Virus record (IMG/VR): IMGVR_UViG_3300032782_000001
Span: 186,001-250,000 of that record
DNA: 64,000 nt
Reading direction: 5' to 3' (one strand)
Position 1 is the stretch's first letter; every line of letters begins with the position of its first letter. The notes below the pieces were generated by a model. It made no database searches, had not been told where the DNA came from, and saw only the letters and a list, made by a program, of their open reading frames with translations. Shown here piece by piece: positions 25,637 to 57,841 of the stretch. The translations under genes and the position numbers were made by a program.

Positions 25637-26566
25637 TCAGGTCAGGATTTTGCTGCCATTCCAAGGCAAAGCAATGTCACCAACCGTCACAGTATCTCGT
25701 GTCGTAGAAACTGAAAGAAGAGTGGGAGTAACATAAGCCTGTCCAACCATTTTCATTAGACTGGAAACTCCTTTCCAACCGACAGGGGCCGTTTTTCCAG
25801 TATCTCTTGCGTAGAACACGGGAAACATCACTTCATTGAATGAATGAGAATGATTACCGGCTCCTCCCGGGAACAGAATCGGTGATGACCCTAGAGCCAC
25901 TCTCATCCAGGGAATGTTAACAAATCCTTCCCCCGCCAATCCCTTCTTCAAATACCCAAGTGGTGAACCAGGAGTGCCGACGGAAAAAGCACTGCTGCCG
26001 ACAAAAATAAACACCATCGGATCGTTATCGGCCGCAGGATAAGATCCTGCGAGCAGAGGGTCCATGACAAGAGAACAAGTTATGGACGAATTGAACTGAC
26101 CGCCAAAGGTGTAGGCAAACATGTAAAAACCATATGGAGCAGCATTGTCACACGCGATCTGGATTCGATAAGTATTATCAGTAGTGAAAAGAGTAGTGGC
26201 ATTTAACAGAGTTTGACTATCAGTTGCAGTCCCAGGTGTCGTGGAATTTGGTGAACCGCCGGTAAATCCTGCTGAAAATGAATACTTAGAAGTCCAAACA
26301 GGATTGGAAGAACCTCTTTGAAATATGAGTTCACGAGAACCTGCACCGGCAGGTGATTGCATTCGAACCCAAGCACTTGTATTTGCGAATCCATTGGCGC
26401 CTGAATTCCCGGAGGTAATAATATCACCTGAACTAGAGAAAGCACTCAACCCGTCTCCGGATGACTGCGTAGTCCATCCTGCAGCTATGAGCGCTTGCTT
26501 GAAGCGGTACATAGCTTGAGACCCCGTCAGGGGTAGAGGATAGTTGATGTCAAATACGAGTGCCAT
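25637..26566 (-). CDS. Tandem paralog 1 of 4
   Basis: Same conserved blocks (AGWTTQSSGDG, AWVRMQSP, TGGSP, CDNAAPYGF, DNDP, GWKG, DIALPWNGS). Start overlaps the upstream stop by 1 nt. Confidence 0.75.
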   Translation of the reverse strand: MALVFDINYPLPLTGSQAMYRFKQALIAAGWTTQSSGDGLSAFSSSGDIITSGNSGANGFANTSAWVRMQSPAGAGSRELIFQRGSSNPVWTSKYSFSAGFTGGSPNSTTPGTATDSQTLLNATTLFTTDNTYRIQIACDNAAPYGFYMFAYTFGGQFNSSITCSLVMDPLLAGSYPAADNDPMVFIFVGSSAFSVGTPGSPLGYLKKGLAGEGFVNIPWMRVALGSSPILFPGGAGNHSHSFNEVMFPVFYARDTGKTAPVGWKGVSSLMKMVGQAYVTPTLLSVSTTRDTVTVGDIALPWNGSKILT

Positions 26567-27891
26567 TAGCTGTAAAGAACCTCAAGCTGCGCGAGCTTGC
26601 ACGTGCAACCATCTCCAGCGCCCGCAGGATTGGGGGTGAAGACTTGAAGTTGGACCTCGTAAGTTCTCAAAGCGTTTTTAATATTCCCAGCAGCACCGCC
26701 TACGGTGAGAGTCCCGGAAATAAGACGAGAAGGTGTCGTGGATGCCACAGACAACGCCGTCCCGGTAACATCTTCTGCGTCGTCTACGTTAAATAATTTC
26801 ACCTGGGCAGTAACGCCAGGGGTTCCTTCCAACACCGCTCGGAACTTGATTGTCCTCGTGAATCCTGAAGATCCAGCTCCAGCGGCAATTACGGAAGGAT
26901 CGAAAACAATGCAACCAATACCTTTATAAGTATTGGAGCCTGTGCCGGAATTAGACTGAGACCCTGTGACACCTGGGAAAGTGAAAATTGCAGGGACAGT
27001 AGCCAGGGAAGAAGGAGTCCATTGTGCTCCGTCCCAAAGAACCACATTGCCGGTTGATGGAGCCGCAGAATTAAAATTCCTACCTTGAATTTTTACAACG
27101 GTGTTAGACCCTATAGTCCCGGTTACATCTCCAGAAAGAGTCAAATTCAAAGTAGTGGGGGCCCATTTGGAACCATCCCATTCCAAAACTTGACTGGAGG
27201 TAGGAGCTGTCGAATCGACCGCCCTACCTTGAAGCTTGATAACAGTTGCACTAGCAATAGTCCCGGAAAGGTCTCCTCCTACTGCAGGATTGGTTGGAGT
27301 CCAAGCCGAACCATTCCACTCCAGGATATCTCCTGAAGACGGAGAACTTGCGCTTATTGGGTGGGATTGTAATCCCACTACCACTGCATCGTTGAGAGGC
27401 CCGGAAAGATCCCCACCAGCGCCTGCCGAAGTATTTAAGACGACATCCCAAATGTCTTCAATAACGTAAAGCCACGCATCCAGTTCTGTCATGGCTCCAC
27501 GGGAGCCCGTTTCAGATCCTTCAGTATAAGCAGGATGACGGCGGGGAAGCGTAGCAGTAGCTGCAATGACCGGATCGCCGGGGTTCCTGGCGTAGAACCA
27601 TAGTTCTGAAATTTTGTTGAGACCTACTCCACCATCAGCAATAAACCGGACTTTATACGTACCCTTGAAAGTAGGAGTGATGGTAACAGCAGGAAGCGTC
27701 AAAGGTGGAACTAAATTATCCCCAGATTCTATTAAACTGTGATCGACAGGACGACTAATTAACTGCCATTCATAAATACCGAAAGCAGACGTCAGAGAAA
27801 AGGTCACGGGGGTCCCCGTAACCACATCGTAGTTCGGGACTCCGGTGGTGACCGACAGACCCTGAGTTATGACGATGACCGGGCCTGGCAT
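26566..27891 (-). CDS. Fibre protein with three GGDL/W repeats and a C-terminal domain shared with the collagen-like protein
   Basis: Three (A/V/L)(G/S)GD(L/V)(S/T)G...V..(L/I)Q...P..G..L.W.G..W.P repeats; C-terminal FPGV.G.Q...GIG.I..DP...AV(L/I)E.TP...YEVQL...TCKLAQ. Confidence 0.7.
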   Translation of the reverse strand: MPGPVIVITQGLSVTTGVPNYDVVTGTPVTFSLTSAFGIYEWQLISRPVDHSLIESGDNLVPPLTLPAVTITPTFKGTYKVRFIADGGVGLNKISELWFYARNPGDPVIAATATLPRRHPAYTEGSETGSRGAMTELDAWLYVIEDIWDVVLNTSAGAGGDLSGPLNDAVVVGLQSHPISASSPSSGDILEWNGSAWTPTNPAVGGDLSGTIASATVIKLQGRAVDSTAPTSSQVLEWDGSKWAPTTLNLTLSGDVTGTIGSNTVVKIQGRNFNSAAPSTGNVVLWDGAQWTPSSLATVPAIFTFPGVTGSQSNSGTGSNTYKGIGCIVFDPSVIAAGAGSSGFTRTIKFRAVLEGTPGVTAQVKLFNVDDAEDVTGTALSVASTTPSRLISGTLTVGGAAGNIKNALRTYEVQLQVFTPNPAGAGDGCTCKLAQLEVLYS

Positions 27892-27924: not shown

Positions 27925-30900
27925 TCAGTTGAGAATAATAAGTTGTAGAGAATTGCGTTTGAGATCCCGCACCAATCGATAAGTGTGGAAGTTTCCATCT
28001 TCCCAGTCAAAAGGACGACGGAACAAAGTTTTGCCTGAATTTAGATCTTGAACTTTGACGAAACGAAATGAACCAAGCTTTTCAAAGCCGATACCAGCTG
28101 TAAAGCCGAAAGGTCCGGCAATTCCGGAAAAACCAACATAGATTCCTGAGTCCAAATTAGTGGATGGAGAGAATACGGAATTGATTCGAATGGAAAGAGT
28201 CATTTCAAACTTGACGGAAATAGAATCAGGGAGCCCCGAGCGGCTCTCATATGCCGTTCTCGTAGTTCCAATAGTTCCGTAACGCATGAAGTCTATTGGA
28301 CCTGCACTCATCATGGTGACGGACACAGAAGAGGGATCGTCTGACAAAATGAACCAGGGCGTGTATTGAGGAACGTCTAGTCCCAACAAGAAAATGGCTG
28401 AACCACTAAGAATCATTACTTTGGACGAGGGACCAGACGTCGGGCTAATAAGCCTAATGCGTCCATCGATCTCAGATGAGGCAAGAGATGAAGGGAGTCC
28501 CGGCGCAGAGTTGATTCGTGAAACAACAGCCCCCGAAGTCGTATCACCCGCTTGGAAAGTCACGAGAACAGGATCCGCTTGATCTACCTGAATCGTGATG
28601 GTTTCTCCTCCTACGATATTGAACGGCGGGGTCAGATTCCCAACAAGCTGAGCATTCTCAGGAAGAGCCGCACCAGTGAAAGTAAGCGTCTGATCTTGTT
28701 GCGCTTTAAATCCATCAATATGCCACGTTTCATCATCCGAGAACGGTGAAACGTGACCAGGTTCCCCCGTCGGAGTCCGGAAGAATTTCATTCCTTCATA
28801 CAAAACACGTGATGGCGGATCTAGTCTAATGAACACGGTTCCGCCGTGAACACCAGGCTGGACTCTATGAAGTTCATACTTTGTCCTAATCTCATTAAGT
28901 AAATCCACCGCCGTAATCAAATCCACAGCATCGGGGGATGTGACTACATTCACAGTGTCATCTGTTACGTGCACGTCATCTGCCGTCCGATGAATGTTAA
29001 ATTTGAGTTTAAGCTGATTGGTGGTAAGAATAAGACTGGCAAGATCAGAAGGTGGGGGCAAGAACACATGATCTTGAATGTCTTCCGTCACGTGGGTTCG
29101 AGGTCGAACCAAATGCATGTTGAATTGATTCAACAGATCAGCAGCAAGGGTCAAAGCAGTAACGGTCGGTCCATCGATAGAGCTGACTGACAGCACGGGG
29201 GAGAAGCCAAAATGATAAAGGTTTCCAACTCTATGAAGGTTATACTCTGACTTGAGCTCATTGAGAAGTGTAATCGCGGTATTCAAGTCAAATGCATCTG
29301 GAGATACAACAGCATATCTAATGTCAAGATCTTCATGCAGTTCCACTTGGGACTCGATGAGTGTCCTGTGCCGATTGAATTTCAGCTTCATATCATTGAT
29401 CAATCCAATAATGGATGGCAAATCCAAAACTGGTTGACCTGCGACAATTCGAGTGAAGGAACTTGGAGAAGAATCCGGAGTCGCATAAGGAGCAGATGCA
29501 GTAAAGAATCCGGCACCTACAGCAATAACGACCCTGAACGATCCAGCATTTGGACCCGTGAGAAATTCGATAGAGTTCCCGATTCCCAAAGGAATGGTCG
29601 GATTTTCGACAGTAACCAGATCAGCTTGGACCGATCCATACCCCAGACCCGGAATCCGTAGAATCGTTTCAGCATCGAGAATGTCAGAGAAGAAATGGAA
29701 TGATGTGGCCAATACGTGGGCACTCATTTGAACTCGAACTTCGTCAGCGAGAATCGCCAGACTAGTAATATCGGAAGCGTCAGCTGCCGTCACGATATTT
29801 GTGACATCAGGCGTGATGTGGAGCGGGCCGCCGTTCCTATGACCTGTGTACTGAACAATCAAGTCATCTGCCAGTACGACAGCTGAATCAATATCAGTCG
29901 CATCGGCGGATGTAACTATGTCTTGGTTGTCATCGAAATCATGAATACCAGGTTGAGTCCTGTGGGCGTTAAATTTAGCTTTCAGTTCATTGAGTAGTGC
30001 GATGGCCGACGACAGATCTAAAGCTGCTGGAAGAATCGAAGCGTTTACGAGATCATTGGATACATGCAAACCTGGCTGCACGCGATGTGAATTATACTTA
30101 GATTGAACATCATTTGCAATAGAAATAACATCAGAAATAGCATCGGAAACTGTTGTAGCTGATGGTTCAGTAACAACGTCATCAATATCATCTTCAAGGT
30201 CAGAAATGAATCCTTTAGTATTAACAAGATCTACGGACGGAATATTTTCTACGGGAGTAACGACACGAGTTAGCCCTCCCCTAGACTCAAGATTTTGAGT
30301 CTTCGGGACTGGCGGAGTGCCTTCGCCGAGAATAGTAAAAGCAGCAACATCCGCATCGCTCATGAAATCGTCCAGAGGAGTGCCACCAGAATAAATCCGG
30401 AAGCCAAAATGTTGATGAGTCTTGGCAGTAAAAAGATGATCGGGAGACGCTACAGCATTTGCCCGATTAGTAACTTGACCGGGAGAAATAAGTCGATCGC
30501 TCAAAGTGAGTTTGCCGATGGAATACTTAATGAAATCCCATCGAGTCCGGACGATCTCTTGCGGATTGAAACTACCGAAGGCTACGGCTTGATGGCCGCT
30601 TGTGATTCCTTTCAAAAAACTTGTGGAGGATGATGGAAGTCGCAAAGAGTCGTAATTTGTGCTGATTACAGGAACTTGTCCCCCATCCACATAAACGGAA
30701 ACGGCAGACACGGGGTCACGAACAATTCGATAAGTGTGGAGCGCTGTCCAATCAACTTGATATAAATAGTATGAGTCGAGAATCGTAGGATCTCCACCCA
30801 TGAAAATTCCCACGAATCTACGACTAGAAGCGCTGGGATCAGAAATCTTACTATCACGGAAAACTGTCACAGTATTCCAATCCACCACAGACATGGCAGA

Positions 30901-33900
30901 ACGCATGTCACTTCCGTTTACTGGAGCACTTCCGGATCCAAACGACAAAGAAGGACCTGCCAATCCAGTATTTAATCCAGAATAAGTCGGTGACGGTTGT
31001 CCCGATAACGGACTAAGAAGAGATCCGTCTGCGAGGACAAAAATGGAATCGGCGTTCTTGGACGTGTAGACATCATAAGAGTGAGTTTGCCCGTCTCCCC
31101 AGTTGAAAGCGTACTGAGCTTTCACGTCCAAAGAACCGGTAGACGTATTGAAAGACACAAGATTTAGGTATTTATTGTTGGTTATCGGATCAATAGCAGT
31201 CTGCAGTTCTAAAGACTTACCGGAAGGGCCTTCATCAACGGATACTAAAGCACCACAGAAATGATATGTATTGTACGGGGGCGCCGCCGGGATACTATCA
31301 CCAGGCACGAATGAAAGAACTGCGAATCTGCAGTCCATCTTCCAATCCACAGATGAATTGAATGCTTGATTTGTAACTACAGGATCAGCAAGATTAAATA
31401 CAACATAATCAGAAACGTCTGAATCGGTCAGACGCATAGTCCGACCAAGCATTTCAGAAGACTGGGTACCGGCTCTAGTCCAAACTGGGCTATCGAGGTC
31501 AGGAAGATTCTCGCCGAACCAACTTACTCTTGGTTCCGGATTCGAGTCCTTGCCTCGATAAACTCCAGGACTGAATCCAAGTTTGGACAGCGAACTCCCG
31601 GAAATGATCTGAATACTGGATTGAATACCAACATCTGAGCTAGTGAGGGTGACTCGGCCTCCTGCTGCAGAAGCTAAAGTGAAACCAGCTGCAGTATTGA
31701 TAGTCGAAGCCACATTCACGGCAGTGGAATCAGATGGTGAGAAATTCACAGTAAAGGGAGGAGCTCCATCCAGACTAATGACGATGGAGTCACCTGAAAC
31801 CATCGGAAACGGTTCGGTAGACGATCCTGTGATAGTAGCCGGAGATGGCGAAAATTGAAGGAAACAGAATTGAACTGAAAAATTTTCGTCGTCGAGGAAA
31901 ACCCCCGCAGCTCGATTATCCAGGCTATGGGTCCAAAAATCAATCGAAGCAGCGAATTCGAAACTACAGGCAGTGTTTACAGAAAGAATAGGTTCAAGTC
32001 GTAGACATCCTCTATACGCACCAGAGCTCAAGCCTAGAGCTTGAACACTAGCAGAAGGAGCTGACGCCGTGGAATCAATCGTCAAAATTCCTGAAGCTAC
32101 TCGTTCCACGCCTCCTTGGCCAACAGTGATCCAAGGAGCTTGAGGATCCAATTCCGGAAGAGTATCAGCTTCGTAATCTACTCTCTTATTATCCCCGATT
32201 AAGTTTGCATCCACAGGGCTCATGTTGGAACGAACGAAAGCCCAATTGCTAGTTGATGTTGAATTTCTACCAATTGACCCGAAGAAAATTTGTTGTAGTG
32301 GGTCGAATTGTCCATCCAAATCGCTAATGGATGGGAGTTCCGTAACCGACGCTGTAGTAATAGGTGAAAGCCCACCGCTCAAGAAGAGTGAAATATCTCC
32401 GTCAGAATCACGGAAAATACGGTAAGTGGTAAGAACAGTCCAATCGACGCTAGCAGCATTCCAACTTTCTTGGAATTCCGCGAATCCTCGATTAGTAAGA
32501 ATCCCGGCTTGGCGAACTTGGTTGACAACGTTAGTTACGTCATTGACGAAGTGAATTCCAGGTTGTGTTTCATGTGCATTGAGTTTAGTCCTAATTTCAT
32601 TCACAAGAGTAAGAGACGTGGGCAGGTCATCCGCATCCGGAGACACAATGGGGTCAATCGTGTCTGGGATAATATGAACACCACTGGCTCCACCTTTTGC
32701 CATGTGGAGGTTCATTTTAGATTTCAGGTCATTCAATAAGATGACCAAAGATACTAGATCTGTCGCATCAACGATAACGACTGTATCATCAGGATCGTTG
32801 GGGATATGAGATCCTAGATTCGTAAGGTGTGAATTAAATTTAGCCTTCGCATCATTGACCATCACAATAGCTGACGATAGATTAATAGCGTCAGTCAGAA
32901 TGAATCCAATAACAGCCACTTTCTGGCCATCAGAAACTCCGAAAGAAACCCCTGTGAAAACTCCATCATTGACAGATTCTTCTACGAACATACGGAATGC
33001 TGCCGACAAAATAGCCGGTGCCCGCATGTCAATAGTATGAGTAAAGAACGGAGGTTGACTCGACGGTCCAGTCTGAATATTGGAATCGACGATGGTCAGT
33101 TGATTCCCTCCGGGAGCGAGAATAAACGTACCGTCACCTTCAAGAGTCCAAGGGTTATGGGCATTTTGAGGGAGTGTGATCGGGTCGTATCGAATGGTAG
33201 TTTCGAAGAAAGTTTGGAATAGGACAGGATATGCAAGACGATTGGTAGGAACGTTCAAAAGAAGGGTGCTGGGATCATTCAGAACAGCGGAATACCTCCT
33301 TTCAAGGCCTTTATACTTCCAGCCAACTTTTTGCGGCTGATAGGGGGACGTGAAATCAGGACTGGTGACTGGGTCAATAAGAAAAGACCGAGATCGATAC
33401 CTGTGTTCTGGGAATCCAGCATACCCGCGATTCCCAGCCTGATTCAGATTGAATTCTGGAGAATTTAGTCTGAGTAACTTGGCCGGCGGATTATTCAAAA
33501 ATGCATAGTTGATCGAGACTATATCTGTGGGGCTCGGTTTATTTGTAAGAACAACTGCCCCGAGAAGTCCGAATACTGCATCAACCGCAGCAGGAGACCC
33601 ATTCACAATTACGTCTACGTCCGCAGAATCATCTGCAACCATTCCAGGCCGAGGATCTTTGAGAATCCAAGAAAAAGGTCCAGTAAGGGGGCCCGGATAT
33701 AGACCCGTAATTGGTTTTACTTCTGAAATCGTGACCCGATTAACGGAATCCCCGACTTGATGAGATTTAAGGTTTTGCCTATGAGATTCAAATTTCCTAC
33801 GTAAATCATTGACAAGAATAACCGCACTAGCCAATGACGTTGCCGCAGGCGATAGAATCACATCATCCGTATCCGCAACTTTGTGAACAGGCGGAACACC

Positions 33901-34413
33901 TGATACGTCCACTACGTGTAAATTAAATTGGGTACGAATATCATTTAACATGATGATAGCCGATGCCAGATCAACAGCAATCGGGCTAGTTACTATGTTC
34001 ACGGTATCATCGGTCCCGTGGACTCCGATGATAGTAGTCCCCTGAGTAATTTTCTGAATCCTGTGAGAGTTATACCGAGCTTTGAGCTCGTTGGTTAAAC
34101 CCACGACAAGATTAGTAGTGATCCCAACATCAGAAATATCAAAACTAGCGTTTTCAAGTTGAAGAAGTTGATTATTGATGGCCTTCTTAATGTAGAAGAC
34201 CCCGTCGTTGCGGCCTCCGGCACTTCCCGTGATTGCAATTTGCTGACCCACATTGAGGGAATTGAAACTGCCAGTCGGAATTGAAACCTGCGTTTCCGAC
34301 ATAATTCGGAGGTTACTTCCGGCCAATAAATCAGCTGGCCTCTTGACAATAGGGCCTCGATTGGTAAAGAGAGTCCTATCGAGAACAGAGCTGAGACCAG
34401 TAAAGGTGATCAT
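27925..34413 (-). CDS. Giant virion protein with 15 helix-His-loop-His repeats, lectin-like (ConA/LamG-type) domains and adaptor domains
   Basis: Repeats such as LNELKAKFNAHRTQPGIHDFDD; four (D/N)W...(H/T)(T/S)Y lectin-like segments; two adaptor-domain copies. Confidence 0.7.
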   Translation of the reverse strand: MITFTGLSSVLDRTLFTNRGPIVKRPADLLAGSNLRIMSETQVSIPTGSFNSLNVGQQIAITGSAGGRNDGVFYIKKAINNQLLQLENASFDISDVGITTNLVVGLTNELKARYNSHRIQKITQGTTIIGVHGTDDTVNIVTSPIAVDLASAIIMLNDIRTQFNLHVVDVSGVPPVHKVADTDDVILSPAATSLASAVILVNDLRRKFESHRQNLKSHQVGDSVNRVTISEVKPITGLYPGPLTGPFSWILKDPRPGMVADDSADVDVIVNGSPAAVDAVFGLLGAVVLTNKPSPTDIVSINYAFLNNPPAKLLRLNSPEFNLNQAGNRGYAGFPEHRYRSRSFLIDPVTSPDFTSPYQPQKVGWKYKGLERRYSAVLNDPSTLLLNVPTNRLAYPVLFQTFFETTIRYDPITLPQNAHNPWTLEGDGTFILAPGGNQLTIVDSNIQTGPSSQPPFFTHTIDMRAPAILSAAFRMFVEESVNDGVFTGVSFGVSDGQKVAVIGFILTDAINLSSAIVMVNDAKAKFNSHLTNLGSHIPNDPDDTVVIVDATDLVSLVILLNDLKSKMNLHMAKGGASGVHIIPDTIDPIVSPDADDLPTSLTLVNEIRTKLNAHETQPGIHFVNDVTNVVNQVRQAGILTNRGFAEFQESWNAASVDWTVLTTYRIFRDSDGDISLFLSGGLSPITTASVTELPSISDLDGQFDPLQQIFFGSIGRNSTSTSNWAFVRSNMSPVDANLIGDNKRVDYEADTLPELDPQAPWITVGQGGVERVASGILTIDSTASAPSASVQALGLSSGAYRGCLRLEPILSVNTACSFEFAASIDFWTHSLDNRAAGVFLDDENFSVQFCFLQFSPSPATITGSSTEPFPMVSGDSIVISLDGAPPFTVNFSPSDSTAVNVASTINTAAGFTLASAAGGRVTLTSSDVGIQSSIQIISGSSLSKLGFSPGVYRGKDSNPEPRVSWFGENLPDLDSPVWTRAGTQSSEMLGRTMRLTDSDVSDYVVFNLADPVVTNQAFNSSVDWKMDCRFAVLSFVPGDSIPAAPPYNTYHFCGALVSVDEGPSGKSLELQTAIDPITNNKYLNLVSFNTSTGSLDVKAQYAFNWGDGQTHSYDVYTSKNADSIFVLADGSLLSPLSGQPSPTYSGLNTGLAGPSLSFGSGSAPVNGSDMRSAMSVVDWNTVTVFRDSKISDPSASSRRFVGIFMGGDPTILDSYYLYQVDWTALHTYRIVRDPVSAVSVYVDGGQVPVISTNYDSLRLPSSSTSFLKGITSGHQAVAFGSFNPQEIVRTRWDFIKYSIGKLTLSDRLISPGQVTNRANAVASPDHLFTAKTHQHFGFRIYSGGTPLDDFMSDADVAAFTILGEGTPPVPKTQNLESRGGLTRVVTPVENIPSVDLVNTKGFISDLEDDIDDVVTEPSATTVSDAISDVISIANDVQSKYNSHRVQPGLHVSNDLVNASILPAALDLSSAIALLNELKAKFNAHRTQPGIHDFDDNQDIVTSADATDIDSAVVLADDLIVQYTGHRNGGPLHITPDVTNIVTAADASDITSLAILADEVRVQMSAHVLATSFHFFSDILDAETILRIPGLGYGSVQADLVTVENPTIPLGIGNSIEFLTGPNAGSFRVVIAVGAGFFTASAPYATPDSSPSSFTRIVAGQPVLDLPSIIGLINDMKLKFNRHRTLIESQVELHEDLDIRYAVVSPDAFDLNTAITLLNELKSEYNLHRVGNLYHFGFSPVLSVSSIDGPTVTALTLAADLLNQFNMHLVRPRTHVTEDIQDHVFLPPPSDLASLILTTNQLKLKFNIHRTADDVHVTDDTVNVVTSPDAVDLITAVDLLNEIRTKYELHRVQPGVHGGTVFIRLDPPSRVLYEGMKFFRTPTGEPGHVSPFSDDETWHIDGFKAQQDQTLTFTGAALPENAQLVGNLTPPFNIVGGETITIQVDQADPVLVTFQAGDTTSGAVVSRINSAPGLPSSLASSEIDGRIRLISPTSGPSSKVMILSGSAIFLLGLDVPQYTPWFILSDDPSSVSVTMMSAGPIDFMRYGTIGTTRTAYESRSGLPDSISVKFEMTLSIRINSVFSPSTNLDSGIYVGFSGIAGPFGFTAGIGFEKLGSFRFVKVQDLNSGKTLFRRPFDWEDGNFHTYRLVRDLKRNSLQLIILN

Positions 34414-36908
34414 GGAATTACCGCATTCCCTGCCGTATCAGTGAGACCAACGGCTTGAAGGGTATATGAGATGGGTTCCATGCTGGTTACTCGAATTGAC
34501 ACAACTTGCGGATCTCTCCAACTCATTTCTTTGACCACAATAGATCCACCTGTAAGGACTAAGTTAGATGAATCGAGTGGGACTTGATACATTGGCTTAG
34601 AAAAGTATACTTCTACAGTGTCGGCTTCCAGTCGAACACCGGCATCAGTGTCAACAATTCCAGGCCTAGGGAGTGCGGATGCCAAAGAGGGGGTGGACGC
34701 AACACCTTCAATGGGGAATTGGATCGATACTTGATGGTGATGATCTGCCCCTAAATGCCTACCATCAAATGTACCGGGGGTCAAATCACCATCGGAATTA
34801 TCATGATACACATCTTTGAAATTAGCAGAAAAAGTATACGTCATGCTATCGATCATTGAATCAGTCTCAATGATGATTCCATCAAAGAGTCGAGCTGAAT
34901 AAATACGCCATCCCGGTGCAGAATGAACTCCCAATTTAATATTGTGAGCCAAGAATTTCTTACGAATTTCGGCCACTAGCGCCACCAAAGTATCCATATC
35001 AGAAGCAATTGGTGCCTGGACGATATCGAAATCTGATTGGAAATGATAAAAATTACTCGACATATGATTGTTGAGATTGATAACAAATGAATTGACAGAT
35101 ATGATTGCATCTTCTAAAGTAGGAGAAACGGCGTAAACCGGATTATTCATGAAATCAATATTCTGGTGACCAGCTCCTGTATTAGGGAATCCTGAAACAT
35201 GTTGTGAGAATGCAAATGCAAGTTGATTGAATGCCCACATAACACCAGGGAGAGTAGCTGAAACTCTAACTGAATTAGACTCAACAATATTCCCACTAGA
35301 ATCCAGAAGTTTGACTGAACTGGAAGAGTCAAGAAGCGGTTCTCTATCGAAGAAGAGAGCTGCTGATTCATCCACTACTTCCTGATCGAAAATCTGAGTA
35401 ACCTGCGTATTGACTGCACGGGCAATAATGCTGCCTGTGTAATCACCAGGATTGGTCATACTACCGGCGTCATCACTTGTAAGCGTGGCTGCAATCGTAA
35501 CGGGTATTTCATTGGAATTCATGACTAGATGTAAATCCGCGTAATAAGTATAGGGGGTTTCCGCAGGGAACACTTGCGGAAACAAATCTGTGGACGCACT
35601 TAATTGAGTCCTGTCTAAAATTTCTGGTCCAATCTGGAATGGGTACCTAATAGAAAAAGGGACAGAATAAATAGGAGCCAAATGACCATTATAAGCCGGC
35701 TTCAAATTCTGGTTCATCACAGCCACGGCGAATCCGAGTTGACCATGAGGAACGGACAAGAATCCGAATGTGTTGTATAAGTCATTGTAAACATGAACAC
35801 CGGACGCCACAAAGTGAGATAGAACTTTCAGTTGTCCTTCATTCAAGATGTCGATACCGCTGTCTGTATCAACAGCGTCAGGTGATGTGACCGTATCAGT
35901 AGGATCATTGTTGACATGTATTCCGGCTGCCACCAGATGAGCATTGAATTTTGCCTTGAAGTCATTCATGAGAGTGACAAATGTGGGCTCATCAATTGCG
36001 TCGGGGGCTGTAATTAGATCAACCGTATCTGTATGGACGTGCGGACCTTGCTGAGTCACTGACCAATTCGTTTGAGTTCGAGCATCTCCAACTGGTCCGT
36101 TGAAATAAACACGAACAGTGCCAGTCATGATGAAATCGTTACTAACATCTGCTACGTATGCATCAATAATCTGAAGTTGAGTAATTTTTGTGTAGTCATA
36201 CGGAAGAGGAGACCTTAAAACTAGGTCTAAATCAGTGCTACCAGTAGCCGAATTGAAAGACTGGTCTACGACACCTGAGAAGTCAATCGCATAGGAATTA
36301 GCCGCCGCCATTCCTGGAGGAAGTGCAAATCTCAAAGAGGATTCAGGTAGAACGAGTTCCGAAGACCAAACTTGAAGCGTCATAGCGACGCCTCCGCCAC
36401 CATTCGAATCTCTGATTGTTGCTGTTGCAGCAGGAGAAGTGGGTCCTACGGATCGATCAAAAACAATATCCACACAACCACGACGGGACAGATAAGCTCC
36501 GAGAACATGAGGAGGGTCAATAACATTAGCAGTAAAATTGCGAGCTGCCCCAGAAACTCCTTCGCCTGCAGCATCTTCCACACCAAACACTTGAACGGAA
36601 TAAGCCGTACCTGAGGTAAGGCTGAGAGAAAGGTTCAAAACAACAGAGCGTCGAGTTTCATCATAAAACTCGACTGAAAGAATGGCTGGAACTATGGCTG
36701 TCCCTGGAGGAGCCAAAGACGACATGAAATACATACCAACAGGGAGTGCTGAATCTGTAACAGGAACGTCGAATACAATTCGGACTTTCCGGGCACCAAT
36801 CTGATGGGCCGTAAACCCGAACGTGCCGAGACCGAATGAATCAACAATCCCGAGAACGATGTTCCCGAGTTGACTGTTCGGAGTGCCGAGCCTTCCAGTA
36901 AAGGGCAT
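34410..36908 (-). CDS. Virion protein with Ig-like (Big-type) domains and 6 helix-His-loop-His repeats
   Basis: V.I.FD.PV...Y...V.GV.D.AG Ig-like segments at both ends; two His-repeat triplets; ATGA overlap with the 2162-aa gene. Confidence 0.7.
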   Translation of the reverse strand: MPFTGRLGTPNSQLGNIVLGIVDSFGLGTFGFTAHQIGARKVRIVFDVPVTDSALPVGMYFMSSLAPPGTAIVPAILSVEFYDETRRSVVLNLSLSLTSGTAYSVQVFGVEDAAGEGVSGAARNFTANVIDPPHVLGAYLSRRGCVDIVFDRSVGPTSPAATATIRDSNGGGGVAMTLQVWSSELVLPESSLRFALPPGMAAANSYAIDFSGVVDQSFNSATGSTDLDLVLRSPLPYDYTKITQLQIIDAYVADVSNDFIMTGTVRVYFNGPVGDARTQTNWSVTQQGPHVHTDTVDLITAPDAIDEPTFVTLMNDFKAKFNAHLVAAGIHVNNDPTDTVTSPDAVDTDSGIDILNEGQLKVLSHFVASGVHVYNDLYNTFGFLSVPHGQLGFAVAVMNQNLKPAYNGHLAPIYSVPFSIRYPFQIGPEILDRTQLSASTDLFPQVFPAETPYTYYADLHLVMNSNEIPVTIAATLTSDDAGSMTNPGDYTGSIIARAVNTQVTQIFDQEVVDESAALFFDREPLLDSSSSVKLLDSSGNIVESNSVRVSATLPGVMWAFNQLAFAFSQHVSGFPNTGAGHQNIDFMNNPVYAVSPTLEDAIISVNSFVINLNNHMSSNFYHFQSDFDIVQAPIASDMDTLVALVAEIRKKFLAHNIKLGVHSAPGWRIYSARLFDGIIIETDSMIDSMTYTFSANFKDVYHDNSDGDLTPGTFDGRHLGADHHHQVSIQFPIEGVASTPSLASALPRPGIVDTDAGVRLEADTVEVYFSKPMYQVPLDSSNLVLTGGSIVVKEMSWRDPQVVSIRVTSMEPISYTLQAVGLTDTAGNAVIP

Positions 36909-36911
36909 GAA

Positions 36912-37769
36912 TCAACTAGTCCTGGACCGACGTGCTAGTTTCTTCCTTGCAAAAACAACTAAAGCACGTGCCTTTCGGCATACTATGCATTCGTATCGAA
37001 CCTTTAAGCCAATTTTCTTATGGCATTCTCCGATCGGGATTGGACCGTGGACCTTGCAGTTGAAATGAGTCCGTTCTAATGATAACCTCTTGAGAGTCGC
37101 ACCACCGTTCTTGATCGCGGCATCTGACGGACGACGACCTTTCATGGCTGCAGAGATTTTAGCTCTCGCTTCCGTGGATAGCTTTCTGCCTGACGACGCC
37201 TGCCGGATTTTTTCTTTATGGTCATTGGAGAGCTTCTTCCCCCGTTGCACTTCGGAAATTTTCCGCTTAGACTCGTCGGAATGGTGTTTTCCTTTGAAAG
37301 AAGAACCGAGAGCCACAATCTCCGGACGAGAATGAACTTCCTTGGAAATTTTGGACATCTTCTGACGATATTCAGGCGTCCATGATGCCTTACTAACTGC
37401 AGACGCCTTCTCTCGGAAGCCCGGACGGTTCCAGTAATCAGTTTTAACTGAATGTGGGGTATGAAGTCCTCCCTGCATAAGATTGAAACCCTTCTCGGAA
37501 TTCCTTGTGTCGTAGAATTCAATCCAACTCTCTTCAGCTAGATTCGCAACTCCGAGCTCAGAGCAAACTTCAAGCACCTCGTGCAAAAAAGCATCCTTCC
37601 CATATTTCCGAATTGCACTCCAAAAATAACGACATCCTTTGCCGAGTTTGGACTTCGCATTATGAAGATGTTGATTCCATCGCTTCATCATTGTGAGCTT
37701 CGTCAGCCCAATATAGCGACGTCCAGATTCAGTATGCGTATGACAGTAAATAGTCCAGCGAGTCCCCAT
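36912..37769 (-). mobile_element. Free-standing GIY-YIG homing endonuclease with NUMOD3-like repeats (copy 2)
   Basis: TIY...GRRYIGLT, RWNQH, AIRKYGKDAF, KGFNL..GG; GKHHSDESKRKIS, GKKLSNDHKEKI, GRKLSTEARAKIS; C-terminal CxxH...CxxC. Confidence 0.88.
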
Positions 37770-37796: not shown

Positions 37797-40550
37797 TCAT
37801 GCCCAGGTAAATACGATTTGTGCCAGTTTGCAGGTAGCCTGATCCGAAGGCCCAGGACCAGTAGGACCAGAAGGTCCCGTCGGATAGCATCTAAGCTGAA
37901 CTTCGTAGAGTTGCATCTGGTTATCCAAGTCGGCCGGCACGGTCAGTATCTGTCGAACGAGTGTGGGAGTGGTATTGATCAAGTTCTTCGTAGTTCCCGA
38001 AATACCAGTACCGACGCCAAGGTTATAGAGACGAATCTCTGCATACATGCTTGGCGTGGACTCAATAACAGCTTGCCATTCGATTTGTCGACCACTGACT
38101 TGAGTTTTGGTTGGATCTACTGCGATGGCTCCAATACCAACGAAGCCAGTTTGACCAGTTTGTTGAGCTCCAACCACCCCCGGGAAAACAACAGAAATTG
38201 GGAATGGTCCAGATCCGCCCCCACCACCTCCACCAGGACCAGTTGCACCTTGAGGACCCGTCGCTCCGGTAGCTCCGGCGGGTCCGGTAGCTCCGGCGGG
38301 TCCGGTAGCTCCCGTTACGCCTGGAGATCCTTGCGAACCAATAGCTCCTTGCGGTCCAGTGGCTCCTGTAACTCCTGGAAGGCCGATCGGACCTGTGGAT
38401 CCCTGAGGTCCGGTAGGTCCCGCAGGTCCAATTGCACCTTGAGGACCAGTCGCCCCCGTCAACCCCGGAGATCCTTGAGGAGCTCCGGCGGGTCCGGTAG
38501 CTCCAGTGACCCCGTCCATGCCGGCAGGACCCGTAGCCCCCTGAGGACCCGTAGCCCCCGGAGCTCCAGTTACTCCGTCCGCACCTTGTGGTCCAGTGGC
38601 TCCAGTGACGCCGGGTGACCCTTGAGGAGCTCCCGCAGGTCCAGTTACTCCAGTGACCCCAGGTGAGCCCTGAACGCCCTGCGACCCAGTAGGGCCAACC
38701 GCACCCGTCGCCCCAGTTGCACCAGCATTTCCAATGGGTCCGGTTGCACCTTGTGGACCGGTTGCACCTTGTGGACCGGTTGGACCAGTTACTCCAGTTA
38801 AACCTGGAGACCCTTGCGGACCTGTTGCTCCTTGTGGCCCCGTAGATCCTTGTGGCCCCGTAGATCCTTGTGGTCCAGTCGCCCCAGTTGCTCCTTGGGG
38901 ACCAGTTGCTCCTTGGGGACCAAGGGGCCCTGTAACGCCATCAATTCCCGTTGCACCTTGAAGGCCCGTTGCACCTTGTGGACCGGTTACTCCCTGCGCT
39001 CCGGTTGTACCGACAGGTCCAGTTGGGCCAGTTGCTCCAGTGGCCCCTTGTGGACCGGTTGCACCTTGTGGACCGGTTGTACCAATAGGTCCAGTCGGGC
39101 CAGTTGCTCCAGTGACTCCGTCTACACCGGTGGCGCCTTGTGGACCAGTTACACCATCAGCTCCTGTTGAGCCCTGCGGCCCTGTGGGGCCAGTAGCCCC
39201 CGTTGCACCTGGGGGCCCACCAAAGGGACCCGTAGGCCCTTGAGGACCAGTGGAACCGGTAACACCTTGTGGGCCTGCAGGACCTGTCGGACCAGTAGTT
39301 CCCGTAAAACCTGGAGAACCTTGCGGCCCGATTGAACCAGTAGGTCCTTGGGGACCTGTGGGGCCAGTTGCACCTTGCGGGCCAGTTGGTCCAATTGGAC
39401 CACCAGAAGGTCCAGTCGGGCCAGTAGCACCAACGGCACCAACCAAACCAATCGCAGAAATTTCGCCTGTTAAGAAATTGACAGTTCCGGAGTTAGCAAG
39501 CCATTGAACCTTTACGGTATAAGTTCCAGCTGACAAGGCCGTGGACGTAAACGTCCCGGCCACAATGCTCATGGAAGTGGATTCTCCATCCTCTTGGAGA
39601 GATGGACCGTTTTGGGAGTCAATAACGAGTCGAAAAACGGCAGAACTTGAAAGAACATCAGGCTGCCACTGGAGAGAGAACGACGCCGAAATAGGCGCCG
39701 TACTTCCAATAGTGACGCTCGTAGACATACCCGGGATGTCTACGAATCCGACACTCGTAGTCTGAGCAAATGTCGGAGTGCTAATATATCCGAAGGGAAT
39801 TGGAGCGGGGGCTGGTGCCGGACCCTGAATACCCGTAGCGCCTTGTAAACCTGTAGCTCCTTGTGGTCCAGTGACTCCCGGAGAACCTTGAGGCCCAGTC
39901 GGCCCCGTGGCACCAGTCGCTCCAACTGGCCCAGCAGCACCTGTGACTCCAGCGGGTCCAGTGACTCCCGGAGAACCTTGAGGCCCAGTCGTTCCAGGAC
40001 TACCTTGGGGACCTGTGGTTCCTGCAATACCAGGAGAACCTTGAGTTCCTTGGGATCCCGTAGCTCCTCTCGGTCCCGTTGGTCCAGTCGCCCCCGTCGA
40101 TCCGACAGGTCCGGTGGCTCCAGTTGGTCCCTGAGGACCTCCAAAAGGCCCCGTGGGACCCTGGGCACCAGTAGGACCCACAGGGCCCGTGACACCAGTA
40201 GGACCCGCAGGTCCCGCAGGTCCTATGGGACCCGTAGAACCAGCAGGACCGGTAATTCCGGTGATGTCTGTTTTAAGTTGATCAATGGCCCCTGCAGTCA
40301 AAATATGAGTGACTGTCGCGCCGAAAGCGTGGGTCGCTGCGGAAGTTCCCTCTTGACCACGGAGAACTGTAAATAAATTCCCGGCGACTCCAGTGACGAT
40401 CAAAATCTCATCGTCAATCCGAATACGGAATTGCGGGAGAGGAGGAAACAACGCAGCGCTGGCGACAGTAACATTCGTCGCCACGGGGCTAATGCCGCCG
40501 AGCTGGTTGATAGTCGTCTGTGCGCCGTTGGAGAATTTCTCGGTGGTCAC
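37797..40550 (-). CDS. Collagen-like fibre protein (two Gly-X-Y blocks, internal BclA-CTD-like domain)
   Basis: About 50 and about 135 G-X-Y triplets rich in GPT/GAT/GPQ; N-terminal '[10 protein letters not shown]...[15 protein letters not shown]' domain; middle '[12 protein letters not shown]...FRLVID...[10 protein letters not shown]'; GTG start. Confidence 0.88.
38230..40265. repeat. Coding tandem repeats (9/18-bp periodicity) of the collagen region
   Basis: For example (GGTCCGGTAGCTCCGGCG)n near 38265-38312, (GGACCGGTTGCACCTTGT)n near 38737-38782, and a 36-bp duplicate GGTCCAGTGACTCCCGGAGAACCTTGAGGCCCAGTC near 39865 and 39955. Confidence 0.9.
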
Positions 40551-41458: not shown

Positions 41459-44400
41459 TCAGCTTGCCGGCCGATAGGTCAAAGTGATGTCCCCCGGAGT
41501 CAAGAATTCAATTTGAGATGTATTGATATCTTGAACTCCCTTATCACCACTCACTACATAGGTTGCAGAAAATGCATGGTTGCCGGGAACGTCTGGTGGA
41601 GTCGCACCAGCGTCGAGTGAGACCACCACCCGATTAGCAGTCCTACGGACTCTCTCAGCGGGAATAGCAGAAGCCACGAATACAACGGGCAAAAGAGTAG
41701 CGTCGTCCGAATACCCTTGAATAACAGCACCGTTCTGACCAATAATCCAAGATTGATTTACAGCATTTCCCACGGATTCCAAAGAATCTGCCATTTTCAT
41801 GATGAGGTCATCTTTGAAAACACCATGATGAATATTATTAGCACCTCCACCGTCAGTGGTATTGAATGGAAGCGCTTGAGTCAGAAGATAAACAGCGTTA
41901 GCGAATGCGTTCAAAGACGGCAGAGCCACAGATTCGGGCAGAATTTCATCTCGAATTCGAACGGCTCCATCTTGGAGGGATAAACGAGAGAACGGCTGGA
42001 CGACAAAATCTACTCCCGTTGTGTCGTCAATAACGGATGTTACGTCTGATTGATGGATGGAACCACCAACACCTTTGGAGTCAGTCAAAATAGTGAACGA
42101 AGTTCGAATGGCGGAGTCAACTGTGGCTTGATTTGCATTTGGAAGCAGCTGGACAGTAGCTTCTACCGATATCGGATTCTCAAGAGCTTGCTTCACTACA
42201 ACATCCGCAGTAACATGCCGCATCGTTTGGATTTTGGCTTGCAGCTGTTGTAGAACATCGTTCACCACATAGGTAACGGAAAAATTTTCATCTTTCTGAT
42301 AATCGACCGATATTGTCGCACCGCTTGCGATGTTGGATAAAGTCGTTCGAATAATCTTGATAGGTGTGGTCTGTGATCCACCAACGACAAGATAATCTGG
42401 ATTGGCATTATCAGGGCCGTTATATTGAATAGTCCTGTCTTTACTATAGACCACCAGAGTAAAGCTATTGATACCAACGGAATCGAGAGGCTCCTGGAAT
42501 TCACCAATCAATACATGTTGTTCGTCATTGACCTGGAGTGAATTCCCGGAAGGAACATTCCCAACTTGATTGATCGTAATGAAGTCCTTAGCAATAGTGC
42601 TCTCTCCTTCAAGGAGAGGATCTTGGATCTTGAAAATGGTGAAGCCTAATACAGAATCAAGCGCTCCTGAAACTTCGCCAGTTACAGATGAAACCCTTAG
42701 GATCGGTTGAATCGATGGAATGAATTTGTTGTTACTACGGAATCTATAATCACCTTCCACGAAGTCATCGAGAAGGGTCTGCGGCTGCGGAATGGATTGG
42801 CTGAGACGAATTGTCCTATAGTCAACGAGAGTAACTCCCGTCAGATCATAAGAAGCGGTGGGAAGATCCGAATGATTTCTCAACCCGAGTCCTTGGCTCG
42901 GGTTGAAGAGCATTTCTACGATCGGATTGGATGGGGTGAGTCTTGAATCTCTGGCTCGAAACGTGAGAGTAGTGACGTCAATAACATCAAACCTTATGTT
43001 TTTTGCAATCTCAAACTGGAAAGCAAATGTTTCCGTAGTGGTCCTCTCAAGAGTCCCTTTCACATAAATATCGACTTTGCCGCCAATGTGCTTTTTGCGG
43101 ACTTCATCATAGTCACGCATCATGAAAGGATCGCCCGATTTAATTACGCGCGTCTCGAGAACACCAGGCACAGAAATAGAATTCTCTTCGTAACCACCTT
43201 CGGTACCAGTATCCAAAGAAGAAAGTGCGTTTTGTGCGCTCTCTGCGAGTTCCAAGTTACTCTGAACGTCTCGACCAAAATCTGCAGCTACTTCATTGAT
43301 AGTATTGAAACCACTCGCGCCAGATACGACTGTATCAATACTCCCAGCGGGGATATTGCCTGCCGAACCCGGGGTATCGGCAAACATTTGGACTTTGATC
43401 TCATATCTACGAGTATCTTGATTGTAGAAACTCTGAGCATTGGCCGCGGTAAGTGTAGCCGCACCTTTAGCTCTATAACGTGGAGCCGTACTGACAGTGG
43501 ACGAAGAAACGATAGCGTTTTGCGCCACAATCAGGTCACGTGTCGGTTTCGTAGTCGTATAGAATGTCTGGTTAACAACCGACGGCCGACTACCAAGGCG
43601 GGGGATTCCGAAATTTTTTGCTAGAGAGTCAAACGCGGAATCAATTAACCCTTGGGTGGCAGCGTCCGTAGACAGGCTCAAAGCCGCCTTCAGTGCTTGT
43701 TTATACTGAGAATTAGATACTGGAATGCTCGTCCCCGTGAGACCAGGGTCGTCGATTTGAAGGAGAGCGGAGAAAGACTTAGCTCGATGGACAAAGTCCA
43801 TCAAAAAATAAGCCTTTTGCATTTCATTAGCAAAAGGTTCAATATGAACTTCCCGAACTGTGGACCCAGGAATCAAAGAAAGAGTTGGCTGAACTGTTGA
43901 AATCTCTCGAATATAATTATTAACGACCGCATCTTGTTGACGGATCTGGATACCGCGAACAGTTGCGTCTAAAGCTAGAGGGTTCCCAGAAATTTCTTGA
44001 GAGAACCTACTCTCTTGGAGAAGACCGGTGGATTTATTGAAGAAGACAGATGTTATGACGTAGAAGAGGGGATCTTCAGACGCAACTGCCGCAAATGTAT
44101 CGGAGTTGAGAGTGTTGTTAACGATCCCATTATTGCGATTATGATTGAAGGTAAAAAAATTGGTCTCTTCCAGAGCGGAAACGGATACGGTTAGTCTGAA
44201 ATTAGGCTGACCAAGAAGTGAATATCGATTATCTGACGTCTGAGTGATGACCTCATTTGTAACTGGGTCAAGAATTTGTGAAACAATCCTGACATCATTT
44301 CCAGAAAAAGGCGTGATTTGAGGTGCGGAATCAGTAAGATCATAACTTACTGATGAGCTCGGAATTTCTTCCACTACGGTGGTCGTTGGAGAGGTGAAAG

Positions 44401-49051: not shown

Positions 49052-49345
49052 TTAGCGTTTGCTAATACTATCTCTAACTCCAATAAGATGATCGATTCTA
49101 GATCTTTCCACTTTGATCAAATTCTCCATTCGTTCTTTCACGGTCTGAAGATGAGCTTTGACTCTTCCGAAGTGAATCCTTTGGTTATGCTTCCATGGGA
49201 TTCCCTTCTCTACCCCAGAGCCAGCGCAATCAGAAGCTTCTGCTGATCGTCCAGAAGCTTCTGAAGATTCTCCACTCTCGTATCCGCTGCCTGCTTCAGC
49301 TGCGTCAACGATCCCGTTTTCCGATTGATCCTCTGGTCGATCCAT
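49052..49345 (-). CDS. Small protein overlapping the end of the 1752-aa gene (start uncertain)
   Basis: Fills the 158-nt gap with a plausible helical C-terminus (WKHNQRIHFGRVKAHLQTVKERMENL). The only upstream ATG lies 136 nt inside the previous gene. Confidence 0.45.
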   Translation of the reverse strand: MDRPEDQSENGIVDAAEAGSGYESGESSEASGRSAEASDCAGSGVEKGIPWKHNQRIHFGRVKAHLQTVKERMENLIKVERSRIDHLIGVRDSISKR

Positions 49346-57433: not shown

Positions 57434-57841
57434 ATGCTAATTGTCCAAGTCAACACTTTGCGTGACGGATCCCGGATTGAAGGGGCCAGGTGGGAAATCA
57501 AAAGCCTGACAAATGTTAGAGAAGGTCATCACATGCAAGTGAGCCTTCCCACGTCAGACGTCCACGTAATCAGTTACGTGAAGAAGCAGGCCAAACAAGA
57601 ACTCGGATTGGAGAAGGATGAAAATAAAGGGAAAAATGCCCACTCCGTGATTCTCAAATTCGTAGTAAAAGAAATTCGACATTTACTAGACACGACCACT
57701 AGTGATATGGATACAATGGTAACACTAGTACCCGTAGACAGGGTCGTGGAAGGCGTACTTACGTATCTACTTCACCCTGAGAAATGCGATCCTCGGTGGG
57801 TGCAAGTCATGAGAGGCAGCGCAACTGCTAATCCTACTTAG
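57434..57841 (+). CDS. Orphan 135-aa protein inserted on the opposite strand between hub and spike
   Basis: Exactly fills the gap; its stop overlaps the hub stop; -10-like TAACGT lies 8 nt before the ATG. Confidence 0.65.
   Translation: MLIVQVNTLRDGSRIEGARWEIKSLTNVREGHHMQVSLPTSDVHVISYVKKQAKQELGLEKDENKGKNAHSVILKFVVKEIRHLLDTTTSDMDTMVTLVPVDRVVEGVLTYLLHPEKCDPRWVQVMRGSATANPT

Follow-up and report, generated by a model that had tools for sequence, protein, structure and literature searches.

A predicted three-helix module with six histidines in putative virion proteins of a 436-kb wetland phage

Two adjacent giant genes in the tail region of a 436-kb wetland phage (IMG/VR record IMGVR_UViG_3300032782_000001) carry about seven copies of an unnamed domain of ~130 residues, which is made of three helix-loop repeats with six almost invariant histidines. 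The domain is predicted to fold on its own into a shape that found no counterpart in the structure libraries searched, and it probably cages a metal ion, although this last point is inferred from sequence alone. The window analysed here, that is, the whole 64,000-nucleotide stretch at positions 186,001 to 250,000 of the record, had been described in an earlier note as holding 21 helix-His-loop-His repeats, mostly in threes, and this observation is confirmed. The interpretation that accompanied it, in which each triplet would form a three-helix bundle with a six-His metal site within one chain, is only partly supported, since the repeat and the triplet unit hold while the convergence of the histidines and the binding of a metal remain inferences.

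The two genes, here called A and B, are joined by a 4-nt overlap between the stop of B and the start of A (Table 1). By using a profile HMM built from 17 seed copies of the ~41-aa repeat, 15 copies were found in A (each 44-66 bits, i-E 1e-13 to 4e-20), including one copy that was not in the seed, and four strong copies were found in B. Two further copies in B (aa 383-424 and 591-632) are weak and degenerate, being recognisable only by position and by the kept His. No other stop-to-stop ORF of the window, in any frame, scored better than E about 1. In the alignment of the 21 copies, the helix-end His (His1) is present in 21/21 and the loop His (His2) in 20/21, as the earlier note had claimed, the latter being missing only in copy 3 of B, and the spacing between the two is 6-14 residues in all 20 copies that have both. 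Histidine makes up 4.9% of repeat residues, against 0.9% (A) and 1.7% (B) elsewhere. Two corrections to the note are required: its consensus is one residue out of register in the helix, which reads A-I-x-L-[LVA]-N and not A-I-x-L-x-N, and its coordinates are right to within about 30 nt, the groups that it counted as four and five repeats lying at 29659-30153 and 28819-29436 and the other four as in Table 1.

Table 1. Coordinates of the two genes and of their repeat units within the window
Feature	Position	Strand	Residues	Description
Gene A	27925-34413	-	2162 aa	15 repeats (five triplets)
Gene B	34410-36908	-	832 aa	N-terminal Big_5 Ig-like domain (aa 40-120); 6 repeats (two triplets)
Triplet A-I	33724-34134	-	A aa 94-230	Repeats 1-3; six His
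Triplet A-II	32524-32895	-	A aa 507-630	Repeats 4-6; six His; unit modelled with AlphaFold2 (as window 32506-32907)
Proposed triplet A-III	29785-30153	-	A aa 1421-1543	Repeats 7-9; grouping into threes inferred
Proposed split triplet A-IV	29179-29787	-	A aa 1543-1585 and 1660-1745	Repeat 10, an inserted beta domain, then repeats 11-12; grouping inferred
Inserted beta-barrel (predicted)	29437-29658	-	A aa about 1586-1659	About 70 aa, between repeats 10 and 11
Proposed triplet A-V	28819-29184	-	A aa 1744-1865	Repeats 13-15
Triplet B-I	35637-36008	-	B aa 301-424	Third copy degenerate, lacks the loop His; five His
Triplet B-II	34890-35267	-	B aa 548-673	Strongly diverged (8-27% identity between its three copies); six His

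A recent duplication or an assembly artefact was considered and rejected, because the copies share only 10-57% identity, and are therefore old, and because an independent Logan contig spans the region without a single difference. In a second wetland sample, 8 of 11 SNPs are synonymous.

At the level of the family, 1251 representative database proteins carry the repeat at E<=1e-3, and the family comprises more than a thousand sequence clusters at 50% identity. Among the 150 best of these 1251 proteins, runs of exactly three adjacent copies are the mode, with 150 runs against 19, 20 and 16 for four, five and six. After filling in missed copies, 91 of 148 proteins have a multiple of three copies, where 49 would be expected, and all six His are kept in 109/129 triplets. 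The working unit is a triplet, of which the window holds about seven. In about 15% of triplets, and in B-I here, the sixth His (the loop His of the third repeat) is absent from its aligned column, so that an intact six-ligand cage is not obligatory. Across 388 repeats from other proteins, the conservation is 100% for H24 (His1), 100% for H31 (His2), 98% for D35, 85% for N15 and 79% for N38, and the hydrophobic positions 7-10-14-17-21-24 follow a 3-4-3-4-3 heptad that ends on His1, which places this residue on the buried face of the helix.

Through AlphaFold2 modelling, a single triplet was predicted with very high confidence to fold alone as a compact single-chain domain with three long helices (pLDDT 97.5, pTM 0.91). 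The only strands of three or more residues are short and lie at the two ends, which fits juxtaposed termini and insertion into a host domain. Despite the confidence of this model, no Foldseek hit reached E<=0.001 or TM>0.36 in PDB or BFVD, the best E being 1.3 (TM 0.20) in PDB and 3.1 in BFVD (highest TM 0.36), so this is not an ordinary up-down three-helix bundle. The earlier note had named a match to an already characterised repeat family as a result that would count against it. Searches of Pfam and NCBIfam gave no family for the repeat, and sequence profiles against PDB gave only E>=0.016, all spurious. Faint and partial hits were obtained to PHROG 6994 "head fiber protein" and PHROG 37030 (16-24 bits, E 6e-5 to 2e-2, covering 25-60 residues of profiles 67 and 76 positions long; for PHROG 6994, E 1e-4 to 5e-4 over 25-40 residues), which would fit a distant relation to about one repeat and a half.

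The reading that best accounts for these data, and which is considered somewhat more likely than not, is that the repeats build a previously unnamed domain of about 125-135 aa, in which three tandem units of about 41 aa (a helix of about 19 residues followed by an extended return arm of about 22) close on themselves into a single-chain bundle of three parallel helices with pseudo-threefold symmetry. In each unit, His1 would sit on the buried face of the last helical turn and His2 7-15 residues later in the loop, and the six His are proposed to form a cage on the pseudo-threefold axis that holds one metal ion, most likely octahedral Fe(II), Zn(II) or Ni(II), with the Asp four residues after His2 acting as a second-shell partner. 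The metal would clamp the open end of an otherwise unusual topology and make a small, rigid, stable knob. The analysis itself establishes the repeats, the triplet unit, the conservation of His, Asp and Asn, a confidently predicted compact fold, the lack of any named or solved relative in the libraries searched and the range of host proteins, while parallel closure, convergence of the His, metal binding and the stabilising role are inferred. The other roles offered in the note, namely stiffening, metal or pH sensing and iron-dependent host recognition, remain no more than proposals.

The closest established parallel is given by the HxH histidine cages of trimeric phage fibres and spikes (P2 gpV apex, phi92 gp138 and T4 gp37 tip), in which two His per threefold-related unit, six in all, lie on a threefold axis of a virion protein, are strongly conserved while the surrounding sequence drifts, and may form several sites per protein, as with the seven Fe in the T4 gp37 tip (bioRxiv 10.1101/2023.02.25.529910; PMC11705849). 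T4 gp12 belongs to the same group. In these proteins the motif is H-x-H in beta structure and the three units are separate chains, whereas here the spacing is H-x(6-14)-H, the first His lies in a predicted alpha helix and the three units are tandem repeats of one chain. The P2 gpV apex with its His cage is dispensable for folding and for infection in the laboratory (bioRxiv 10.1101/2023.02.25.529910), so a His cage need not be structurally essential. Literature searches for a helical six-His phage domain found only the HxH systems. Another example of comparable chemistry is found in designed three-stranded coiled coils and single-chain three-helix bundles with His3 sites (the TRI peptides of the Pecoraro laboratory and alpha3D-H3), in which His at core heptad positions of three helices converge on the axis and bind Zn, Cu or other ions. 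However, those are synthetic, their single-chain versions are antiparallel, and they use three His, not six.

It is possible, though unlikely, that the fold is as predicted but the histidines do not bind a metal, and would instead form with the Asp and Asn a buried hydrogen-bond network or a pH-sensitive switch, the domain acting mainly as an adhesin or spacer like the Ig-like domains that decorate phage particles. In favour of this view, the sixth His is dispensable in about 15% of triplets, the conservation of D35 and N38 alongside the His would suit a polar network, and the spread of the module over many virion proteins parallels that of accessory Ig-like domains. However, His at 100% in two positions of 388 diverged repeats, lying on the core face of a helix end, is the classic signature of a metal site, B-II keeps all six His despite its drift, and three-chain six-His cages are recurrent in phage fibres and spikes.

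A homotrimeric arrangement was also considered, in which A and B would be ordinary fibres and each repeat would pair with the same repeat of two other chains, like the supercoiled helix-turn-helix stem of the phi29 head fibre, giving 21 sites rather than 7. This reading is supported by the fact that the known phage His cages are built by three chains, by the faint PHROG 6994 matches, by language-model neighbours that include clusters with Phage_fiber_rpt and Phage_head_fibr (scores 0.72-0.74, leads only), and by the existence of runs of 4, 5, 7 and 8 copies in the family. In the ESM Atlas, the repeat block gave PTR, Phage_fiber_rpt and Fibritin_C scores of only 0.72-0.78, which Pfam did not confirm: hmmscan of A, B and all six repeat blocks at E<=10, and of 85 carrier proteins at E<=0.001, gave no hit to PF11133 (Phage_head_fibr), PF22337 (Phage_fiber_rpt) or PF12789 (PTR). 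With phi29 gp8.5, the family shares helical repeats in a phage surface appendage with threefold helical packing (in the present case predicted), and stand-alone triplet proteins are encoded next to the capsid gene, yet gp8.5 is reported to be a true homotrimer with short helix-turn-helix repeats and no His pair (Xiang and Rossmann 2011). Layering leaves unexplained the strong excess of runs of three and of totals divisible by three, a single chain is predicted to fold compactly with strands at both ends, as expected for a domain inserted into a loop, and the module also sits in sheath-type and Baseplate_J-type proteins, which are not threefold fibres. Small proteins with a single repeat, which would have to trimerise, were searched for with the repeat profile and none was found, although the word index limits the sensitivity of this search. 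The homotrimer is regarded as unlikely.

An open solenoid, in which the repeats would stack as a continuous helical rod of any length with the His lining an inner channel or seam, appears very unlikely. Long uninterrupted arrays of 9-12 copies do occur, and the nine-copy region of A is modelled as one body (pLDDT 88, pTM 0.74), but the commonest architecture by far is exactly three copies flanked by unrelated sequence, stand-alone proteins carry exactly three, and a triplet modelled alone gives pTM 0.91. The nine-copy model shows nine helices plus an inserted beta domain, so the "4+5" of the earlier note is better read as nine repeats, most simply three triplets with a small beta-barrel inserted in the middle one. 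This grouping is inferred from the count of nine and from orthologues with nine contiguous copies. When position-specific HMMs for repeats 1, 2 and 3 of a triplet were applied to these nine, the expected phase was obtained for 6 of the 9, three of them by margins under 2 bits.

The domain behaves as a mobile plug-in for virion proteins, being found in a Baseplate_J protein, in two proteins with a sheath C-terminal domain (Phage_sheath_1C), in Big_5 proteins, in giant A-type proteins and as stand-alone proteins of about 173 aa, likely capsid decoration proteins, which are encoded directly after the major capsid gene of prophages in three independent loci. In this it resembles the accessory Ig-like domains of phage virion proteins (Big, Hoc-like), which are small, autonomous, often present in several copies and often inserted, but the predicted fold is helical and not a beta sandwich, and the near-invariant His, Asp and Asn point to a bound ion rather than to a variable binding surface. 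In this phage, A and B lie in the baseplate and tail-fibre gene block, the window also encoding a Baseplate_J protein, a collagen-like tail fibre and a protein with a tail-fibre PHROG match, and would display seven knobs per A+B pair, although their virion location rests on gene neighbourhood only.

If the prediction holds, the domain is a new protein fold, a closed bundle of three parallel helices within one chain, and a new way of building the six-histidine cage that phages otherwise assemble from three chains. As the family is absent from Pfam, NCBIfam and the PDB and sits in capsid, sheath, baseplate and fibre proteins, naming it would annotate a recurring unknown in phage structural genes. 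A small, very confidently predicted, self-contained and putatively metal-binding knob that tolerates insertion into many host proteins is also an attractive scaffold for protein engineering, and the stand-alone version in prophages of culturable Polyangium and Sorangium strains offers a tractable system for experiments. A more speculative reading, which the data allow but which is doubtful, is that this is a widespread family of single-chain metal-cage domains in which a natural triplication replaces the three chains of the classical phage His cage, loading seven or more metal ions per A+B pair, and many more per particle, onto the surface of soil and wetland phages. The metal could be required for fibre rigidity or host recognition, and such phages would then be a sizeable and unrecognised pool of protein-bound trace metal, a terrestrial counterpart of the "Ferrojan horse" idea.

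Among isolate phages, a megablast of the two genes against 50,697 GenBank phage records gave no match, and tblastn with the nine-repeat block, two consensus-like triplet proteins and the Polyangium stand-alone protein also gave none, apart from one chance-level hit at E = 9, although the low-complexity filter may hide Ala/Thr-rich copies. A degenerate DNA pattern applied to genome contigs gave 50 loci, of which 21 were kept after filtering with the repeat HMM. Every relative that carries a name is called "hypothetical protein".

With regard to the parts outside the repeats, the "Ig- and lectin-like scaffolds" of the earlier note are shown only for the one Big_5 domain in B, as concanavalin-like folds in the non-repeat parts of A are no more than weak language-model leads (scores 0.64-0.76). 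The inserted beta-barrel corresponds to strands at residues 178-247 of the nine-copy model, and the Foldseek hits that stay compact (about 80-95 aligned columns, rmsd 4-8, prob about 1.0) are to small beta-barrels, namely the F1-ATPase N-terminal barrel, the phage Mystique tail tube and the KP34p57 depolymerase. Gene A has orthologues of about 1800-2600 aa, in which triplets sit at the same two N-terminal positions and the C-terminal array varies in length.

An HMM was constructed from 17 visually picked copies of the repeat and recovered 15 copies in gene A, each at 44-66 bits, one of which was not in the seed, as well as four strong copies in gene B. Two more copies in B are recognisable only by their position and their retained histidines, and no other stop-to-stop ORF of the window, in any frame, scored with this model. 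In the alignment of the 21 copies the helix-end His (His1) is invariant, while the loop His (His2) is missing once, in the third copy of B, and the two His are 6-14 residues apart. Histidine is about five times commoner in the repeats than in the rest of A, and about three times commoner than in the rest of B; B also contains a short His-rich patch outside the repeats, with a run of three His within a segment that has another His nearby. The copies share only 10-57% identity. An independent assembly of a wetland run carries the region without a difference, and a second wetland sample has a near-identical strain in which 8 of 11 differences are synonymous. The observation of the earlier note, which described 21 helix-His-loop-His repeats in two adjacent genes, is therefore confirmed, apart from a slip of one residue in its helix consensus. 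Both genes belong to the long block of minus-strand genes that makes up the window, and the stop of B overlaps the start of A by four bases.

Coordinates of the genes and features discussed in the text (positions in the window unless a locus is named)
Feature	Position	Strand	Product or extent
Gene A	27925-34413	-	2162 aa
Gene B	34410-36908	-	832 aa
His-rich patch of B outside the repeats	about 34740-34790	-	B aa about 708-722
Predicted beta-barrel between repeats 10 and 11 of A	29437-29658	-	about 70 aa
Protein just downstream of A	26566-27891	-	441 aa
GIY-YIG/NUMOD3 homing endonuclease	36912-37769	-	285 aa
Collagen-repeat protein	37797-40550	-	917 aa
Protein with Baseplate_J domain	41459-44911		1150 aa
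Large gene without family match	6091-10641		1516 aa
Large gene with one weak tail-protein PHROG hit	10697-15355		1552 aa
Large gene without family match	49210-54468		1752 aa
Large gene without family match	57838-61416		1192 aa
Stand-alone triplet protein, Polyangium locus (L048)	1767-2282 of L048	-	172 aa
Stand-alone triplet protein, locus L056	6001-6537 of L056		about 173 aa
Stand-alone triplet protein, locus L057	6001-6522 of L057		about 173 aa

A profile of the single repeat was searched against 1.84 billion representative proteins, and 1251 proteins were found at E<=1e-3, with 105 at E<=1e-30. The 150 best of these were re-analysed. Runs of exactly three adjacent copies are by far the commonest, with 150 runs against 19, 20 and 16 runs of four, five and six, respectively, and the copy numbers per protein peak at 3, 6, 9 and 12. 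After allowing for single missed copies, 91 of 148 proteins carry a multiple of three, where about 49 would be expected. In an alignment of 129 triplets, all six His are present in 109, and the one most often absent from its column is the loop His of the third repeat, which is also the one lost in the first triplet of B (B-I). Orthologues of A, of about 1800-2600 aa, keep a triplet at about aa 95-225 and another at about aa 500-630, whereas their C-terminal array varies, with nine contiguous copies in the orthologue P0013 and 4+5+3 in the orthologue P0002. The C-terminal array of A, described in the earlier note as 4+5 copies, is therefore most simply nine copies, that is, three triplets.

By using AlphaFold2 with the triplet alignment, A aa 503-636 was modelled with a mean pLDDT of 97.5 and a pTM of 0.91. 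The model has three helices of about 19 residues (10-28, 51-69 and 95-114), each followed by a non-helical arm of about 22 residues. The only strands of three or more residues are at the two ends (3-5 and 131-133), which suggests that the ends lie side by side, as expected for a domain inserted into a loop of a host domain, and the loop His of repeats 1 and 2 lie in isolated beta-bridges. Foldseek found nothing at E<=0.001 in 350,542 PDB chains or in BFVD, the highest TM-score being 0.36, while an ordinary up-down three-helix bundle would have found many partners. This, together with the equivalence of the three homologous repeats, argues for three parallel helices with long return arms, although this packing is inferred. 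The nine-repeat region (A aa 1413-1877) was modelled at pLDDT 88 and pTM 0.74, with nine long helices and a beta domain between repeats 10 and 11. The only compact Foldseek matches of this model, of about 80-95 aligned columns, are to small beta-barrels, such as the F1-ATPase N-terminal domain, a decoration of the phage Mystique tail tube and a domain of the KP34p57 depolymerase.

That the histidines form a metal site remains an inference from sequence. Across 388 well-aligned repeats from other proteins, His1 and His2 are each conserved at 100%, the Asp four residues after His2 at 98%, the Asn at helix position 15 at 85%, and the Asn three residues after the Asp at 79%, with Asp in a further 15%. 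The hydrophobic positions 7, 10, 14, 17 and 21 follow a 3-4-3-4 heptad whose next position is His1, so His1 lies on the buried face of the last helical turn, and in a three-helix bundle residues at that position meet on the axis. Moreover, the second triplet of B (B-II) has drifted almost beyond recognition yet keeps all six His. Six-His cages that hold Fe on the threefold axis are established for P2 gpV and for the T4 gp37 tip (as reviewed in PMC11705849). However, about 15% of triplets lack a His at the sixth position, and the gpV cage is dispensable for folding and for infection in the laboratory. The Asp (98%) and the Asn or Asp (94%) that follow the loop His, at profile positions 35 and 38 (for example A aa 537 and 540), are as conserved as the His, and, as a speculation, three Asp plus three Asn around the same axis could form a second, oxygen-liganded cation site.

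Pfam (2025 copy), NCBIfam (2026) and the PDB sequences contain no model or chain that matches the repeat or the triplet, and every database relative that carries a name is called "hypothetical protein". The only link is a set of faint, partial hits to PHROG 6994 ("head fiber protein", 67 positions) and PHROG 37030 (76 positions, function unknown). The module works like the HxH cages of trimeric fibres in having two His per threefold unit, but it differs from them in its motif, its secondary structure and, as predicted, its number of chains, while it resembles Ig-like accessory domains in its distribution but not in its predicted fold. The repeat and its grouping in threes are real and highly non-random, and the central structural idea of the earlier note, a single-chain pseudo-trimer, is well supported. 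One idea on its origin is that the family may have begun as a homotrimer and become a triplication. Its interpretation as a whole is supported only in part, since the metal cage is plausible but, like metal binding itself, the convergence of the His and the place of A and B on the virion, it is inferred, whereas the repeats, their number and their conservation come directly from the sequences. The family is large, unnamed and without a solved or predicted structural counterpart in the libraries searched. It would be the phage His cage and virion plug-in domain built in a new way. Confidence in the whole mechanism is moderate, and it is high for the narrower claim that the triplet is an autonomous single-chain domain.

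Beyond A and B, the module was found in a 609-aa Baseplate_J protein, in two proteins with the tail-sheath C-terminal domain, in Big_5 proteins, and in a family of proteins of about 173 aa consisting of a short N-terminal part plus one triplet, with 77 relatives, all "hypothetical". The gene for this last protein lies directly after the major capsid gene in Polyangium and Sorangium prophages and in metagenomic phages. Three loci show this position, one being a prophage head module of Polyangium sp. 15x6, with the order terminase, portal, an unassigned 217-aa ORF, capsid and triplet protein, and the other two being metagenomic contigs. That is the usual position of capsid decoration genes, and the product is probably a capsid decoration protein. 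A degenerate DNA pattern scan of one genome per species, filtered with the repeat HMM, gave 21 true loci, in Myxococcota (including the complete genome of Sorangium sp. So ce1014), Bdellovibrionota, Actinomycetota, Methylobacter, Saccharibacteria and a Methanobacteriota archaeon MAG. On the other hand, no isolate phage in the GenBank collection gave a tblastn match.

The window lies on the 436,316-bp contig Ga0335082_10000001 of a JGI metagenome, from a wetland according to the matching runs, which is the size of a megaphage genome. A and B sit in a baseplate and tail-fibre block, and their place on the virion is inferred from these neighbours alone. Among them are the protein with a Baseplate_J domain and the collagen-repeat protein, which has eight Pfam Collagen matches (E 5e-70), hits to many tail-fibre PHROGs, and a region of 59% G+C against about 46-48% around it. 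The homing endonuclease gene sits between the collagen-like tail-fibre gene and gene B, and looks like a mobile insertion within the structural gene block. The protein just downstream of A has weak hits to PHROG 9627 (function unknown), to a tail-fibre PHROG (9729) and to DUF6087, and may be a further fibre component or a chaperone. Several very large genes lie elsewhere in the window, three of which match no family, while a fourth has the single weak tail-protein hit.
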